From: Epiperipatus broadwayi
Lineage: Eukaryota; Animalia; Onychophora
DNA: 64,000 nucleotides
Assembly (NCBI GenBank): GCA_028023455.1
Contig: JAQFVV010000003.1
Coordinates: 7,254,001-7,318,000 of the forward strand
Direction: 5' to 3'
Under the pieces are notes generated by a model that saw nothing but the letters and a program-made list of their open reading frames with translations, did no database searches and was not told the origin of the DNA. This document shows, piece by piece, positions 4,864 to 48,820 of this stretch. Made by a program: the position numbers and the translations under genes. Every line of letters starts with the position of its first letter. Position 1 is the first letter of the stretch.

Positions 4864-5514
4864 GTATCTTACATAAATTTAAAAAAGGTTAAGTTAAGTA
4901 TTCTAACGATCAACTAATTCTATTATTTATATATATATAATGGCATATCGTTAGCATACATACGAAATTAACAAGATCTCTTCTTTTTTTTTGTACTTAT
5001 TATTTCATTGGTAATGTGGAATATATATATAAGGGAGGTATTTTAAATAAGTTTTATTTTCCAACCCGCTATAATAAAAGGCAGACGTCGTTTTTCAATA
5101 ATTTGTAATAGTTATTTTGATTTTTCGAAAGAATTCCCTCCACCTTCTCCGGTAGTTGTTGTTTTTTTTATTAAATGTTTCTAAGGAGCGAGAAATAAGT
5201 ACATGGCTATTTACTTTAACTAAACTCTATTTTCATTTTTATAATTTGACTAAGAAAGACGTTCGTATCATATATATGCGTCTATTTAATTTGTGGATTT
5301 ATAATTTTTCTACAAAAGTTCTTCGCAATTATTTGTATACTTAATAAACTAAATGCTTATTAAATAAATACGTATAGGGAGATGCAGTATATATAAGCGT
5401 CTGTTATCTAGTATTTGTAATAGAGGGGTACAGTGTGATCTTTTCTATATAATTATCTATTCAATATTCATCAAATATATGTGCGTAAATTAGTTAAATA
5501 ACGTAACTCATATA

Positions 5515-5999
5515 TAAATATAGGGAATTTGTCAGACTTGCAAGCACTCTTCAATTATCAATACTATCTCATACCACTGAAACCCATGACCCCCACACAT
5601 GTAGAAATGATAAATAATCACCAATATACGTATTTCATGCTAAACTAGCATTCATCAGTTGGTCCAGATTATCATCTTTCACATATATATATAATCAGTG
5701 CCCAGTTTATATTAAGATAGCAAATCTTCATACTTTAATGGACAGACTTCATTCTACTGCAATCTCCAACTCTTCAGCCATCCATACCATTGAAAATCTG
5801 GTGATGGAAAGCCCAAACCCCATGCTGATGTTAATATTATTGCCATGCCAATGTTGACCTCAAGTCACTCTGACCCTCATATATAAGACCTTATCCATTT
5901 AAATACATAGAAGAGAGATGGGCAGGATGCAGGTTTAATGTGTACATATTTGAAATATAGGCATTCTTCATATACCTGGAGCTTAATTGTAAATATAGG
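5515..5999 (-). mobile_element. Hammerhead-bearing ~480-bp repeat unit, copy A (retrozyme/SINE-like)
   Basis: Reverse complement of the unit repeated at 6700-7512, spanning one full period. Confidence 0.85.
5613..5674 (-). ncRNA. Type I hammerhead ribozyme, intact core
   Basis: Minus strand reads GAUAAUC-UGG-ACCAA CUGAUGA AUGCUA-GUU-UAGCAU GAAA U-ACGU-A UA / UUGGU GAUUAU. All core nucleotides are present, with a 6-bp stem II, a bulged stem I and an AUA cleavage triplet (cut between 5625 and 5624). Confidence 0.9.
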
Positions 6000-6060
6000 C
6001 AATAATATTGGCATCAGCATGGGGTTTGGCTTTCCATCATCAGAATTTTCAATGGTATTT
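6000..6060 (+). repeat. Inverted fragment of the hammerhead repeat unit
   Basis: caataatattggcatcagcatggggtttggctttccatcatcagaattttcaatggtat is the inverted copy of about 5787-5847. Confidence 0.85.
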
Positions 6061-6165
6061 GGTAAATCCGCACTTACGACTGTGCCAATGTTATAACTGC
6101 AAGTCATACTGTGCAGTCAGCAAATAATGTTATACAATTCCCACGCTGTTTTTTTCCAATGAGTG

Positions 6166-6322
6166 CTCTCCAATGAATCAGTCTGCAATCTCTCCGCTGA
6201 ATTGGTCTGCAATGAATGCTCTCCAACGAATTGGTCTGCCACGAAGCTCTCCAAATGAATTGGTCTGCAACAAAGCTCTCCAACGAATTGGTCTGCAACG
6301 AAGCTCTCCAACGAATGCTCTC
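6166..6322. repeat. ~28-bp minisatellite, about 5.5 copies
   Basis: Unit ctctccaacgaattggtctgcaacgaag starts at 6166, 6190, 6219, 6247, 6276 and 6304. Confidence 0.9.
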
Positions 6323-6490
6323 AATATCTCCACTGTGGTCTCTTTCAGCTACACCCGTAAACTACATTTCCACTGGGCACTGATCAATAACCGCCAGCAC
6401 TGACGCGAGATATCTATACTTAAATACTGCTTACTCAATACTGCTTGACTGCTCTCTACTACTCTCCATGTTACACTGTCTTTTATTGCT

Positions 6491-6621
6491 TGCTGATAAC
6501 TGTGGCAATTAATCCTTGTCCAATCAGATAACGTCTTTTATCCAGAGATATTTGCAAACAGCAAATATCTCTTGGAATTATCATCCACCATTACATTAAT
6601 TAACCTCCTCCGTTATCAGCA
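6491..6621. mobile_element. Small MITE-like foldback
   Basis: Termini tgctgataac / gttatcagca. Central perfect 11-bp stem gagatatttgc-aaaca-gcaaatatctc at 6545-6571. Confidence 0.55.
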
Positions 6622-6821
6622 CGTGATCTAAAAGCAACAGCTCGAATAAATCTAGTTTTTTCTGGAGTACACAAAAATGTCTGCCATTTTAACAAACACT
6701 ACAGTATTGATGGCTTAAGAGTTGGAGGTTACAGTAGATTGAAGTCTGGCCATTAAAGTATGAAGATTTGCTAACTTAATATAAACTCAGTGCTGATTAA
6801 ATATATGTGTAGGGCGGGGGT

Positions 6822-6882
6822 GATAATCTGGACCAACTGATGAGTATTGGTTCAGCACAAAATACGTATATTGATGATTATT
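6822..6882 (+). ncRNA. Type I hammerhead ribozyme, copy B (GAAA mutated to AAAA)
   Basis: accaa CTGATGA gtattg-gtt-cagcac AAAA tacgtata ttgat gattat. The G12 loss fits CpG deamination. Confidence 0.75.
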
Positions 6883-7299
6883 TATCTTTTCTACACAGAT
6901 GTGGTCACATGTATCAGTGGTATGTGATAGTGTGGATAGTTGAAGAGTGCTTGAAAGTCTGAGTTCAAATCCACTATATTTACAATTACACTCCAGGTAT
7001 ATGAAGAATGCCTGTATTTCAAATATTTACACATTAAGCCTGCATCCTGTCCATCCTTCTTCTATGTATTTAAATGGATAAGGTCCTATATATGAGTGGC
7101 CAGAATGACTTGAGGTCAACATGGGCATGGCAATAATAGTGACATCAGCATCGGGTTTGGGCTTTCCATCATCAGATTTTCAATGGTATGGATAACTGAA
7201 GAGTTGGAAGTTGCAGTAGATTGAAGTCTGTTCATTAAAGTATGAAGATTTTCTATCTTAATATAAACTGGGTGCTGATTGTATATATGTGTGGGAGAT

Positions 7300-7364
7300 T
7301 ATAATCTGAACCAAATGATGAGTGCTGGTTCAGCATGAAATACGTGTACTCACCAGGTGATTAT
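7300..7364 (+). ncRNA. Type I hammerhead ribozyme, copy C (C3 mutated to A, stem I 3' strand altered)
   Basis: accaa ATGATGA gtgctg-gtt-cagcat GAAA tacgtgta ctcaccaggtgattat. Confidence 0.7.
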
Positions 7365-8417
7365 TTATCTTTTCTACATTTGTGTGGTCATATGTATCAG
7401 TGGTACAAGATAGTGTGGATAGTTGAAGAGTGCTTGAAAGTTTGAGTTCAAATCCTCTATATTTACAATTAAGCTCCAGGTATATGAAGAATTCCTGTAT
7501 TTCAAATATTTAGTGATTATATAGTGTTTCTACATTTTTTTTATTGCATTTTGCTGATGAATACTGAACCTATCAGTTGCCTGGAATAGTGAATACTGTT
7601 AAAGGAGCAATGAGAAGAAAATGGACATTAAGCTATCACAAAACCCTTGGTTCCTAAATCAGGGTCACACTTAGGCAAACAGGTTCCTTTCTCTAATAAT
7701 CAATTAGAGGTGAAGTAGCTATCCATTGATCAAATTGGCATCATGATGAAGACTTTCCTATATTTTAGAGACATGCATTTAAATATATATCATAAATCAT
7801 TGAGAACCACACTGAATCTTACCCTTTTGTTTTATAATTATGCCTGTTGATATATGATTCTGTGGGTCGCTATGCCAAATCTATTGTTAAAGATTCATTG
7901 GGAATATATATATAATATAAATGAGGTTATGTTCAATTTAGTCTCTGGTTTGTTTACTAATGTTAACTTTACCATGTTCTTGCACCATAGATCAATTTCC
8001 ACAATTCTCCTCTATCTAGTCAAATTTATCCCCGTGTTTAATAATGCATACCAAATGTTTTTGTTTTTTTCTTTTATGTCAAAAATCTAAATACGACTGA
8101 ATCTTATATACATACATGGGTTCTTTTTTGTTATTTTGTAAATAATTCCTTTAAATGAATCATAAATAACTTTATGCTAACAATACACTATAATTTATAA
8201 TAGTAACCAAGTTGTAGATGTTCATTATTATATATGTGCAAACCTGATTATCACATGCTAGGATTCCTAAGAGTTGTTGTCTCTACTTGACCACTGGGTT
8301 GTATTAGAATATTAACTCTCATGAGATTAAGGAAGTGAGTCACTTAGTTAGGATCTAGAGGTGTAGATGAGGTTCGAATCCCTTTACCTATGTCTCTGGG
8401 TCAGGTTAAAGCAACTA

Positions 8418-34499: not shown

Positions 34500-36900
34500 T
34501 CAGGAAAAGGTAAACATTCTACTCCTAAAAATAGCATATAAATTAAGAAGCTTCCTTCTACAATTATTAAAAAATTCATGCTTTCCAAGCTTCTGAATTT
34601 TTACAGTTTTTACAAGGAAAAATTTTCACAGGGAAAAGCAATCACTGTGCTTATCTTTTCCACAAAAATCAGAGAAGGAAATGGGATACAACTCTAAAAA
34701 ATTCAATCCCTGCATTGCTAATTCACTTTAGAGGCAATCTAGAAAGAATGTTTAGTACCCTATATTTTCAAATATAGTGTAAGTGCAATGTTTTGTCACA
34801 CATGTTATGATAATTGTCCAATCACCTAAGTCCATCTATGATGTATTGGTATAACACTTTATTACCATACAATTTTGAAATAAAGTATTAAGAAGGAAGT
34901 TATATTCAGCATGTAAATTCTCTATTGAGAATACCAGATTAAAAAATTTGGACAAATGAACCTAAAATTAACTATTTAAACATGTTACACTCAAAGGGTT
35001 AAAGAGTGACAAACATGAAAAAACAAATATCAGATATTGATGAAATGAATTCACAAATAATGATAACCAATATAAAAACCAAAAATTTTGTTAATCTCAT
35101 TTTGGAATAAATAAAAACAATTCCTAATGGAAAGTTAGTACTACCACAGAGGGGAAAATAAATATTAGCATTAATACATTGGTAACATGTTGCCGTAGTT
35201 TATGAAAAGCCCTGTACCATGGAATAATCCATGAGTCCGGTTTTTCATAAATTATGGAGATAATAATTCATGAAGATATTGCCAAAACATAGTCAATCAA
35301 TGATACAAATAAACAAACTAGGAGAAAAAGGACATGAACTATACTATTCTGTTCAATAGCCATATCTTTTTAGTACTATCTGATGCTTAGTCTATAGAAG
35401 AATATTTATGTAAACAAATTAAAAGAAATATTTGTTCATCATGGATTATCTATAACAGACAATGATACTAAATTATATTCAGTAAGTTCAAAGTATTGAT
35501 GGAGAAAAGAGATATTAGATATAAAACACTTTCATAACATTATGAATTCAATGGACTTTCTGGAAAAGCAGTTCAACAACTAAAAATATAAAGTCTTAAA
35601 AACATTTAACTATGCTAACATACATGGAAATATTATAGTAAATAAAATCAAGTCATACATCATGTGGCATAACTTGATAAGCTTGTATTTTATAAAATAA
35701 AATAATGAACATGCTAATAGCTCTAACCAAGCTTTATCGATGAATGCCACAAAAGAAAGTATTTAAAAATCTCTAAGAAACATCCCTAAAACAATTTCAA
35801 GCTATTGGATTTTCTCAGTGAGATCTAGTGTCTGAAATATCCTAGTGCCTCACAGAGGAAAGCCAATATCTTGACACTAGTTTGGAGAGATGGGAATCTT
35901 TCTAGATAGAGATTTTTAAATGTTTTCTCTTACATTTATCAAAAAAGCTTGGTTAGATCTATTGGCATGCTCATTATTTTACGAAATAGTATCTATAATT
36001 GTATTATATTAAGATGCAACACAATTATAGCAACAAAGTGGTCAACAACCAAAATGCTAATAGTGAGGAATTTAATAGTAAATCTATCACTTTTATTTCT
36101 TGAGAAGAGTAATTCAAGAAGTCACTCTGAGAAAAAAAAAAGTGTGCAGAGATAATAATATTTGATTAGAAATAGATAAAAGAATAATTTCAGTGATAAT
36201 ATCTAATTAAATTGAAAAATTAAGACTGGAGATAACAGTGTTTTCTAAATACATGTAATTCATCTAAGGTATGTAAAAAAACTTTTTAATGGCTAAAAAT
36301 AAAACAGAAGGAATCTGTAATAATAACAAAATAAAAAAGACTCAAGAATAATACATAACTAGTGCTGAAGATTCTGACAAACAATTCAAAACCATTTCAT
36401 AGCTGAAAACCAACAAGGTAGTACATAAAATCAAGCTGATACAGTCAGAGAGAAAGTAAACCTTCATAGATAATAAGGAATAAAATCCCCAACTTTTGGA
36501 GTAACAAGAAATATACTATGTATACTTTAGATTATCAGACCCAAATACATATCCTGTAGTACACTGTTAACTTATACAGATATGTGTGTGTGATATTATT
36601 GTAATTTAAAAATTAATACTGTTTTAATGAACAAATCATGAATAAAGAGATGAGTTTTGTTTTGTTAATAAGTTAAAAGATAAGCTGTAGATCGTTTATC
36701 AAAAAACAAACTATATTAATTAATGAATCTAAAATTTCTTATTTTATTGGTTAGTCCAATAAACAAGCTTAAATATAGCCAAACATAATTCTAGATAGAA
36801 AGCTATAGGATAATACCAACAATAAATTTCAACGTATACAAGAGAAAAACAGTATAGATTGCATACCCGAATCTTATTTATATAAAGCTTTAAATAATTA
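34500..36900 (+). mobile_element. Very decayed non-LTR retrotransposon RT relic
   Basis: Frameshifted remnants: KAITVLI near 34630, KF.P...NSL.R near 34700, VP..NP/MSPVF..IMEII near 35210. Confidence 0.4.
35800..35930 (+). mobile_element. Old copy of the foldback/hammerhead-like family
   Basis: cctcacagaggaaagcc...gacactagtttggag...ctagatagagattt aligns with the reverse complement of the 44070-44170 core. Confidence 0.5.
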
Positions 36901-43990: not shown

Positions 43991-44252
43991 AGGCAAAACT
44001 CTCCCTACAGTAGTGCCACTCAGTGCAAGCCCGAGTAATCAATGGATGTAGGAAGGTTTGTGCATAAAATCCCTATCTAATGCCTAATCATCCAATATTC
44101 CCAGACTAGTTTATAGCTTGTGGCTTTCATCAATGAGGAACTTTGGATCTGAGAGCACTGCACCTAGATAGGGATTGTATGCACAAATCTTCCTGCATCC
44201 ATGGATTACTCTCACTTGCACTGAATGTGCTACTGTCTGGAGAGTTTTACCT
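43991..44252. mobile_element. Foldback element: ~90-bp TIRs around a decayed hammerhead-like core
   Basis: Arms 43991-44079 and 44165-44252 are about 80% complementary. The minus-strand core at 44098-44140 reads cctca TTGATGA aagccacaagcta TAAAC TA GTC tggga. Confidence 0.75.
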
Positions 44253-48689: not shown

Positions 48690-48820
48690 CAGTGAGCTTG
48701 AGTAATGAATGTACACTAGATGATAGTGCTAATATAGCCATTTCTCCAGACTAGTTTATGTCTTATGGCCTTCATCAGTAAAAAGCTTAGATGTAATGCA
48801 GTTATGCATCTAGTAATAAT
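48690..48820 (-). mobile_element. Copy of the foldback/hammerhead-like family
   Basis: Minus strand CTGATGA aggccataagaca TAAAC TA GTC tggag (48743-48780). Upstream agcttgagtaat matches the TIR. Confidence 0.6.

Follow-up and report, generated by a model that had tools for sequence, protein, structure and literature searches.

Hammerhead ribozymes are found in animal repeats of differing organization. Sm-alpha of Schistosoma is a repeat resembling a short interspersed element (SINE), with words like those of RNA polymerase III boxes and an active hammerhead, for which mobilisation by way of polymerase III and a long interspersed element (LINE) has been proposed, and pDo500 of cave crickets is a tandem satellite with a hammerhead in its ~500-bp unit. 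The subject of this report is a family of ~480-bp non-coding repeats found at positions 5515-7512 of a 64,000-nucleotide stretch of the genome of the onychophoran Epiperipatus broadwayi (contig JAQFVV010000003.1, positions 7,254,001 to 7,318,000 of the forward strand; hereafter the window). This family, which can be likened to pDo500 by description only, is dispersed as composite insertions, whereas pDo500 forms a tandem satellite. The explanation we favor, with a probability of about 0.8, is a non-autonomous hammerhead retroelement, that is, an animal retrozyme, whose insertions carry the footprint of Penelope-like elements (PLEs).

Animal retrozymes of the kind without long terminal repeats (non-LTR retrozymes) are, like the present family, small AT-rich non-coding repeats with type I hammerheads, in which a pair of motifs in direct orientation delimits the unit. 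Their consensus lengths of 51-972 bp form a range containing ~480 bp, their copy numbers run from thousands to 10^5, their target duplications exceed 4 bp, and they co-occur with PLEs (PMC7229834; 10.64898/2026.07.22.740005). Dependence on PLEs was proposed by Cervera & de la Pena (2020, PMC7229834), and a preprint (Li, Clavereau & Pollet 2026, 10.64898/2026.07.22.740005) argues for the link in vertebrates from co-occurrence and from similarity of pseudo-LTRs. PLE insertions themselves are 5'-truncated and form partial tandems (pseudo-LTRs) that contain hammerheads. A second copy, inverted and likewise 5'-truncated, often lies next to them, and only one of their ends bears a tail, of 30-40 bp (Craig et al. 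2021, PMC8557442). A purified PLE protein acts at AT-rich sites, where it cuts and extends the two strands of the DNA. Its reverse transcription begins downstream of the hammerhead at two neighbouring positions inside the RNA, and these define the tail (Frangieh et al. 2024, PMC11167929). For the anole element, the open reading frame offsets given in that paper place the first start site ~85-92 nt past the hammerhead cut.

The window locus is a single ancient head-to-head insertion of a non-coding retroelement, interrupted by a nested insertion (Table 1). By repeat search and alignment it holds about 2.8 copies of the ~480-bp unit: a single copy lies on the minus strand, and the plus strand has the remaining 1.8. 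An original prediction, made from the window sequence, had described three ~480-bp units. The unit length and the repeats stand, but the pieces amount to 1 + 0.12 + 1 + 0.68 units around an unrelated 648 bp, and the locus is no tandem, satellite-like array but one composite head-to-head insertion with a Penelope-like footprint. The left arm, copy A, has its 3' end outward, at unit position 279 (...CCCUAUAUUUA), without a tail, and in the centre of the insertion it is cut short at its 5' end, at unit position 271. In the right arm, copies B and C together make up a partial tandem in the pseudo-LTR arrangement. The 12-bp segments flanking the whole agree at 9 of 12 positions, differing by two transitions and one indel, and probably are a target-site duplication, to judge from the clear 11-16-bp duplications at other loci of the family.

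The geometry recurs throughout a sample of 29 independent loci of the family, about 19 of which show the two-armed, head-to-head design. Arms commonly measure 0.7-1.7 units and reach 2.6 units, and their inner ends are truncated at unit positions that differ at every locus. The outer ends, by contrast with that variety, fall into two classes, one after ...CCCUAUAUUUA at unit positions 276-287 (25 arms) and the other after ...UUCAAAUAUUUA at unit positions 322-334 (19 arms). Two-armed insertions have one end of each class, which leaves a tail of ~47 nt on one side only, and single-arm copies with identical termini also exist. Arm ends (...UAUAUUUA or ...AAUAUUUA) run directly into flanking DNA, with no poly(A) or microsatellite tail. 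Exact direct repeats of 11-16 bp surround the whole two-armed structure at 11 of the 19 two-armed loci; because these duplications flank the whole composite, each composite represents one integration event. Of some 52 arm 5' ends, 12 cluster at unit positions 421-454, a hint that a linear template may have had a fixed 5' end. Arms longer than 1.7 units require templates that are multimeric or circular.

This footprint is shared with PLEs in nearly every particular described for them: an inverted 5'-truncated copy, a partial tandem and a one-sided tail (PMC8557442; PMC11167929), together with two adjacent internal starts downstream of the hammerhead, AT-rich targets and the use of both target strands (PMC11167929). 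The differences are that the family has no open reading frame, that its tail measures 47 nt rather than 30-40 bp (PMC8557442), and that its start sites, unit positions 279 and 326, follow the ribozyme cut site by 112 and 159 nt, compared with ~85-92 nt for the first site of the anole PLE (PMC11167929). It differs from described animal retrozymes as well, in that the usual copy is a 1.7-unit arm set head to head with a second arm, rather than an extended tandem array. A foldback-type DNA transposon, or a palindromic satellite with inverted arms of tandem subrepeats, would likewise have long inverted arms built of repeated units. Under either of these, however, one would not look for inner breaks that differ at each locus, outer ends unequal by ~47 nt, duplications varying from 11 to 16 bp, or single-arm copies with shared termini, and we regard this explanation as exceedingly improbable. 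Readings of the family as a satellite, as a foldback transposon or as a product of LINE twin priming were rejected on geometry.

Another alternative is a tRNA-derived SINE, whose transcription by polymerase III would be driven by A and B boxes within the element, past the ribozyme, and whose mobilisation would depend on a LINE. At unit positions ~186-278 there are words resembling both boxes and a sub-threshold tRNA-like fold, about 20 nt past the ribozyme cut, with its 3' end adjoining the position-279 class of termini; a UUUU run, within UCUUUUC, stands just upstream of it. ARAGORN reports no tRNA at its default or 90% thresholds, and the Rfam tRNA model has no match; at 80%, ARAGORN calls the fold in 15 of 29 units, while 24% of shuffled sequences give a call somewhere, so that the tRNA-like identity of this segment is suggestive at most. 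The family shows no LINE-type 3' end, whether poly(A), simple repeat or microsatellite, and both of its arms end at the same two internal sites, an outcome that LINE twin priming does not give. In addition, arms of 800-1,265 nt cross the UUUU runs, and polymerase III transcripts terminating there cannot be their templates. A SINE origin is, on this evidence, very unlikely.

The hammerhead itself was judged by the type I rules: the core bases C3 U4 G5 A6 N7 G8 A9 and G12 A13 A14, an A15.1-U16.1 pair, H at position 17, and a core enclosed by three helices, of which I is open while II and III are closed. Copy A, on the minus strand, reads ACCAA-CUGAUGA-AUGCUA-GUU-UAGCAU-GAAA-UACGUA-U-A/UUGGU, with the slash at the predicted cut. 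All core bases are present, as predicted at the outset, and the triplet is AUA; the 10.1-11.1 pair is A-U instead of the usual G-C. Helix I has 5 bp, a UGG bulge and then at least 6 bp more, helix II has 6 bp and a GUU loop, and helix III of the monomer has 2 bp and an ACGU loop. Each of the other copies has the single core lesion ascribed to it: G12>A in copy B, where stem II and stem I (at 6874) also have a mismatch each, and C3>A in copy C, in which a 5-nt insertion after the equivalent of the cut site (between 7348 and 7349) destroys the 3' strand of stem I. With the equivalent site of copy B between 6870 and 6871, the two motifs stand in direct orientation and bound a monomer of 478 nt, 6871-7348. 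The idea of a retrozyme-like element mobilised in trans therefore holds as to kind, a non-coding, hammerhead-bearing element with a 478-nt monomer, and fails as to anatomy, which is that of a head-to-head composite.

A strict hammerhead descriptor matches once in the 64-kb window, at copy A, and not at all in 100 locally shuffled windows (12.8 Mb); the ancestral motif is canonical and far from chance. Folding with RNAfold places stems I and II of copy A in both the minimum-free-energy and the centroid structure. Its homodimer would form an 8-bp palindromic helix III (AUACGUAU), at a predicted -35.9 kcal/mol compared with 2 x -14.0 kcal/mol for the monomers, which is the double hammerhead arrangement of metazoan type I and PLE hammerheads (PMC4209133). 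Cervera & de la Pena (2014, PMC4209133) described hammerhead pairs on opposite strands 100-700 bp apart, with short palindromic helices III acting via dimers. The family has in common with those PLE and metazoan type I hammerheads a short palindromic helix III, a large helix II (6-8 bp in PLE variants; canonically 4 bp, here 6 bp), the G10.1-C11.1 pair and motif pairs on opposite strands. Unlike the minimal hammerheads of PLEs (PMC4209133), it retains a true helix III, of 2 bp, and its helix I is long and interrupted by a bulge, so that in structure it is intermediate between them and the canonical form; its cleavage triplet is AUA.

The family is very large. A first look through the 5.6-Gb genome gives 9,395 candidates for the ~480-bp unit, of which the 40 that were scored are 84-88% identical to copy B. 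Among 66 aligned ribozyme regions, the majority sequence is GAUGAUAAUCUGGACCAA CUGAUGA GUGCUG GUU YAGCAY GAAA UAYRUAU A UUGGUGAUUAUUUAUC. Its two variable dinucleotides are mixtures of CG, TG and CA, that is, products of CpG decay, from which it follows that the ancestor had G10.1-C11.1, G12 and UACGUA, with a core of CUGAUGA GUGCUG GUU YAGCAC GAAA UACGUAU A. A 34-nt core pattern, with transitions permitted at the two CpGs only, has at least 11,750 exact matches in the genome, and every reversed-pattern control gave 0. Both CpGs are intact in 551 of these. The consensus CUGAUGA GUGCUG-GUU-CAGCAC GAAA proposed from the window copies is thus the true family ancestor, with which the 66 copies agree, and the proposed repeat family with its type I hammerhead is supported, being non-coding and present in high copy number. 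Of the sampled copies, 24 of 66 have the full hammerhead core in register and 6 of 66 match the 34-nt pattern; ribozyme-bearing copies are therefore probably several-fold to ten-fold more numerous than the exact matches, on the order of 10^5, a rough figure from a biased sample. The family is also abundant in at least four coded organisms, represented by four sequencing-run assemblies of uncertain kind, and so is common to related species, coded organisms B, C and I among them. Related contigs in these assemblies have C, not T, at plus-strand position 5646 (stem II of copy A) and, for the most part, G in place of A at position 6874. Depth over the hammerhead bin is high there, at least partly from 5' truncation and pseudo-LTR duplication, and contig joints going back 473-478 nt are present, for which tandem DNA is an equally good explanation.

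Decay of the two CpGs is informative about the source copies. At the first site (C11.1-G12), the 11,750 exact cores comprise 1,851 CG, 6,571 TG and 3,328 YA; at the second, in helix III, they comprise 2,256 CG, 4,050 TG and 5,444 YA. Symmetrical deamination would give TG and CA in about equal numbers. At the catalytic site the decay product that keeps G12 is twice as frequent as the one that loses it, with G12 retained in 8,422 of the 11,750 cores, and the helix III site has no such excess. The second CpG is intact in 30% of cores with CG at the first site, in 21% with TG and in 9% with YA. Since the YA class least often keeps its second CpG, G12-less copies are older on average, and by the same figures the U11.1 lineage, with a G-U wobble and G12 intact, went on amplifying. 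This asymmetry fits selection for a working core in the source copies, and may be taken as a modest sign of constraint. A related and more speculative pair of options, neither of which we think at all likely, is that the 2:1 excess reflects catalysis selected in vivo, dispensable though it is for insertion in vitro, and that the PLE reverse transcriptase, which is telomerase-related, may recognise a tRNA-like 3' tag on its riders, as the tailless start site at unit position 279 coincides with the 3' end of the weak tRNA-like fold. The apparent covariation of stem II among the window copies comes from CpG decay and from two G>A changes private to copy A, and is no evidence of selection.

PLEs that might act as helpers are plentiful in this genome. 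Their presence is read from GIY-YIG domains and open frames: there are 10,242 first-look GIY-YIG candidates genome-wide, all 150 of the 150 scored pass the Pfam cut-off, and open frames extend to 901 aa. At the PLE loci that were fetched, frames of 749-901 aa span the GIY-YIG matches on the same strand. Six loci contain apparently intact Penelope-like elements with frames in this range. The one entered in Table 1 has its 901-aa frame accompanied by a second tandem frame 3,135 bp away, running to the end of the locus, and by a shorter minus-strand frame upstream.

Several observations weigh against the explanation favored here. The target duplication of the window locus itself is degraded. No similarity between the unit and PLEs was found in 26 PLE loci (20 chosen by GIY-YIG and 6 by long frames, few of many PLE families) using blastn with 7-nt words, which returned just 15-22-nt chance-like matches, those of 17-22 nt inside long open frames, plus two adjacent old copies of the family; no autonomous partner was identified among these 26. 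Neither Rfam Hammerhead_1 nor any other hammerhead model reaches its gathering score (34 bits for RF00163), and no Rfam hammerhead appears at E<=10, whether on 2.4 kb, on the 121 nt that surround copy A or on a locus holding core-intact copies, where the only matches were weak chance ones to small RNA, CRISPR-repeat and snoRNA models, with no tRNA family among them. An unfiltered covariance model built from a second hammerhead family of this genome, which is Rfam-positive at 31-40 bits, also misses copy A in the window. Across 29 full units, hammerhead bins are conserved at 0.89 compared with 0.917 elsewhere. No compensatory changes were found among the family copies, in which variation consists of CpG transitions and G-C/G-U alternation. 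Finally, a single founder event could yield the same asymmetry at G12.

The covariance-model match that had been looked for was therefore not obtained, even with core-intact copies, nor was the expected conservation of core over flanks; these are two of the three outcomes that the original prediction had set down as refuting it. We argue that both tests, while not passed, are weak ones for a decaying transposon family. Topology and core bases are the same as in RF00163, yet the family falls below a reportable score. The miss probably arises from the tuning of the models, which is to GUC, to four base pairs in helix II and to a helix III loop of 4 nt. In this family helix II is 6 bp long and closed by a 3-nt loop, A15.1 and U16.1 are separated by six nucleotides, and position 17 is A (AUA). 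On account of such tuning, surveys in the field use descriptors (PMC7229834, PMC4209133), and narrow models such as the one built from the second family are no general hammerhead detectors. Flat conservation, for its part, is to be expected because dead transposon copies decay neutrally, and it says little about source copies, though it gives the ribozyme no positive support either.

These same results are what one would see if the family were a PLE-type retroelement in which the motif is catalytically irrelevant, a relic of a pseudo-LTR or a chance look-alike, with no unit-length or circular RNA produced. Consistent with such an element, G12>A is found in 28% of exact cores, and, among the matches listed, which favor well-preserved copies, 6 of the 7 sets of adjacent arms agree within themselves at the two decayed CpGs, with G12>A often among the shared states. 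Variants thus seem to be inherited from the source RNA, in propagating subfamilies of which some are ribozyme-dead, and this suggests that sources with dead ribozymes were still copied. Hammerhead-mutant, ribozyme-dead PLE RNA is likewise inserted normally in vitro (PMC11167929). An irrelevant motif is hard to reconcile, however, with an ancestor that obeys every hammerhead sequence rule (it has G10.1-C11.1, its helix III is palindromic and its stem I is bulged), with the empty descriptor searches of shuffled sequence, and with the twofold predominance of the G12-keeping variant. We consider it unlikely. The ancestral ribozyme probably cleaved; production of RNA circles, argued by analogy, is possible but rather less than an even prospect.

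Under the retrozyme explanation, insertion would begin at an AT-rich target, both strands of which would be cut with a stagger of ~12-14 bp by the GIY-YIG endonuclease of a PLE. Reverse transcription by the PLE enzyme would start on each strand at an RNA site after ...CUAUAUUUA (279) or ...CAAAUAUUUA (326), and the two cDNAs would extend inward for variable distances, often for more than one unit. Joining of the cDNAs head to head would then generate the outward arms, the pseudo-LTRs, the one-sided 47-nt tail and the target duplication. In source copies, two ribozymes in direct orientation would delimit an RNA of ~480 nt. As helix III is 2 bp long and its ACGU loop palindromic, and helix II has 6 bp, cleavage would probably work best as a dimer in multimeric transcripts, and a host ligase could circularise the freed monomers, as in other animal retrozymes.

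Table 1. Coordinates of the window locus and of related features (window positions unless a genomic locus, G000, is given)
Feature	Position	Strand	Length	Remarks
Left target-site duplication	5503-5514			Probable, degraded; gtaactcatata
Left arm, copy A	5515-5998	-	484 nt	One unit
Copy A hammerhead	5606-5676	-		Includes extended stem I; core 5620-5663; predicted cut between 5625 and 5624
Right arm, start	5998-6055	+	58 nt	Unit positions 426-483; inside the common 5'-end cluster of family arms
Nested insertion	6056-6703		648 bp	Unrelated to unit; splits right arm at unit position 483/1
Right arm, copy B	6704-7186	+		Full unit
Copy B hammerhead motif	6832-6875	+		Inactive by core lesion at 6859, CpG decay product CACAAAA
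tRNA-like segment, weak	6889-6981	+		In copy B, equivalents in A and C; A-box-like (UAUCAGUGGUA) and B-box-like (GAGUUCAAAUCC) words
Right arm, copy C	7186-7512	+		Partial unit, positions 1-326
Copy C hammerhead motif	7310-7348	+		Inactive by core lesion at 7315; helix III UACGUG
Tail	7466-7512	+	47 nt	Right end only; extension from 279-type to 326-type terminus (...CAAAUAUUUA)
Right target-site duplication	7513-7524			Probable, degraded; gtgattatatag
Second-family motif, decayed	35782-35824	-		15.4 bits
Second-family motif, decayed	35847-35888	+		12.3 bits
Second-family motif, decayed	44098-44139	-		25 bits
Second-family motif, decayed	48743-48784	-		15.9 bits
Second-family array	G000:C809:202331-205374			Plus motifs 1501, 1920, 2330, 2741; minus motifs 936, 1351; last three plus motifs ~410 nt apart, 31-40 bits
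Neighbouring arms, shared CpG states	G000 C1:2935967/2936211			
Neighbouring arms, shared CpG states	G000 C1:12938182/12938276			
Neighbouring arms, shared CpG states	G000 C2:15317036/15317157/15317646			
Penelope-like element, apparently intact	G000:C12394:20940001-20950000			901-aa frame; five further loci of this kind
Nuclear COX1 copy, example	G000 C2:8155834-8157171			

The nested insertion that splits the right arm has GTATT at both edges and contains five tandem repeats of 24-29 bp at 6162-6311. In the sequencing-run assemblies it occurs as a repeat in coded organisms A and C, whereas its depth in B and I is zero; as B and I do carry the ~480-bp family, it is a later, younger and lineage-restricted repeat. 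The window locus is dead, given copies 8-15% diverged from the family, core lesions in both B and C, and an arm split by another insertion. An old and broken copy, it is in itself of low value.

The second hammerhead family of this genome shows the same head-to-head layout. Its array on C809 is a head-to-head composite of a ~410-nt retrozyme-like unit. The decayed motifs of this family in the window were found with the covariance model built from it (UCCUCA-CUGAAGA-GACC...GGUC-GAAA-CCGG-UC), and two of them, at 35782-35824 and 35847-35888, form an outward-pointing pair 23 nt apart, again in head-to-head geometry. As a separate observation, the genome contains at least 62 nuclear copies of mitochondrial COX1, several of them near full length with 4-6 in-frame TGA codons (TGA encodes Trp in the mitochondrial code), and so many copies indicate heavy transfer of mitochondrial DNA to the nucleus.

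Few settings in animal genomes give a small ribozyme a plausible job, and retrozyme-type elements are one of them. The link between retrozymes and PLEs has so far been drawn mainly from co-occurrence and, in frogs, from sequence similarity. The full Penelope footprint on a non-coding rider supports this link, and the family offers a large natural set of start sites, tails and targets.

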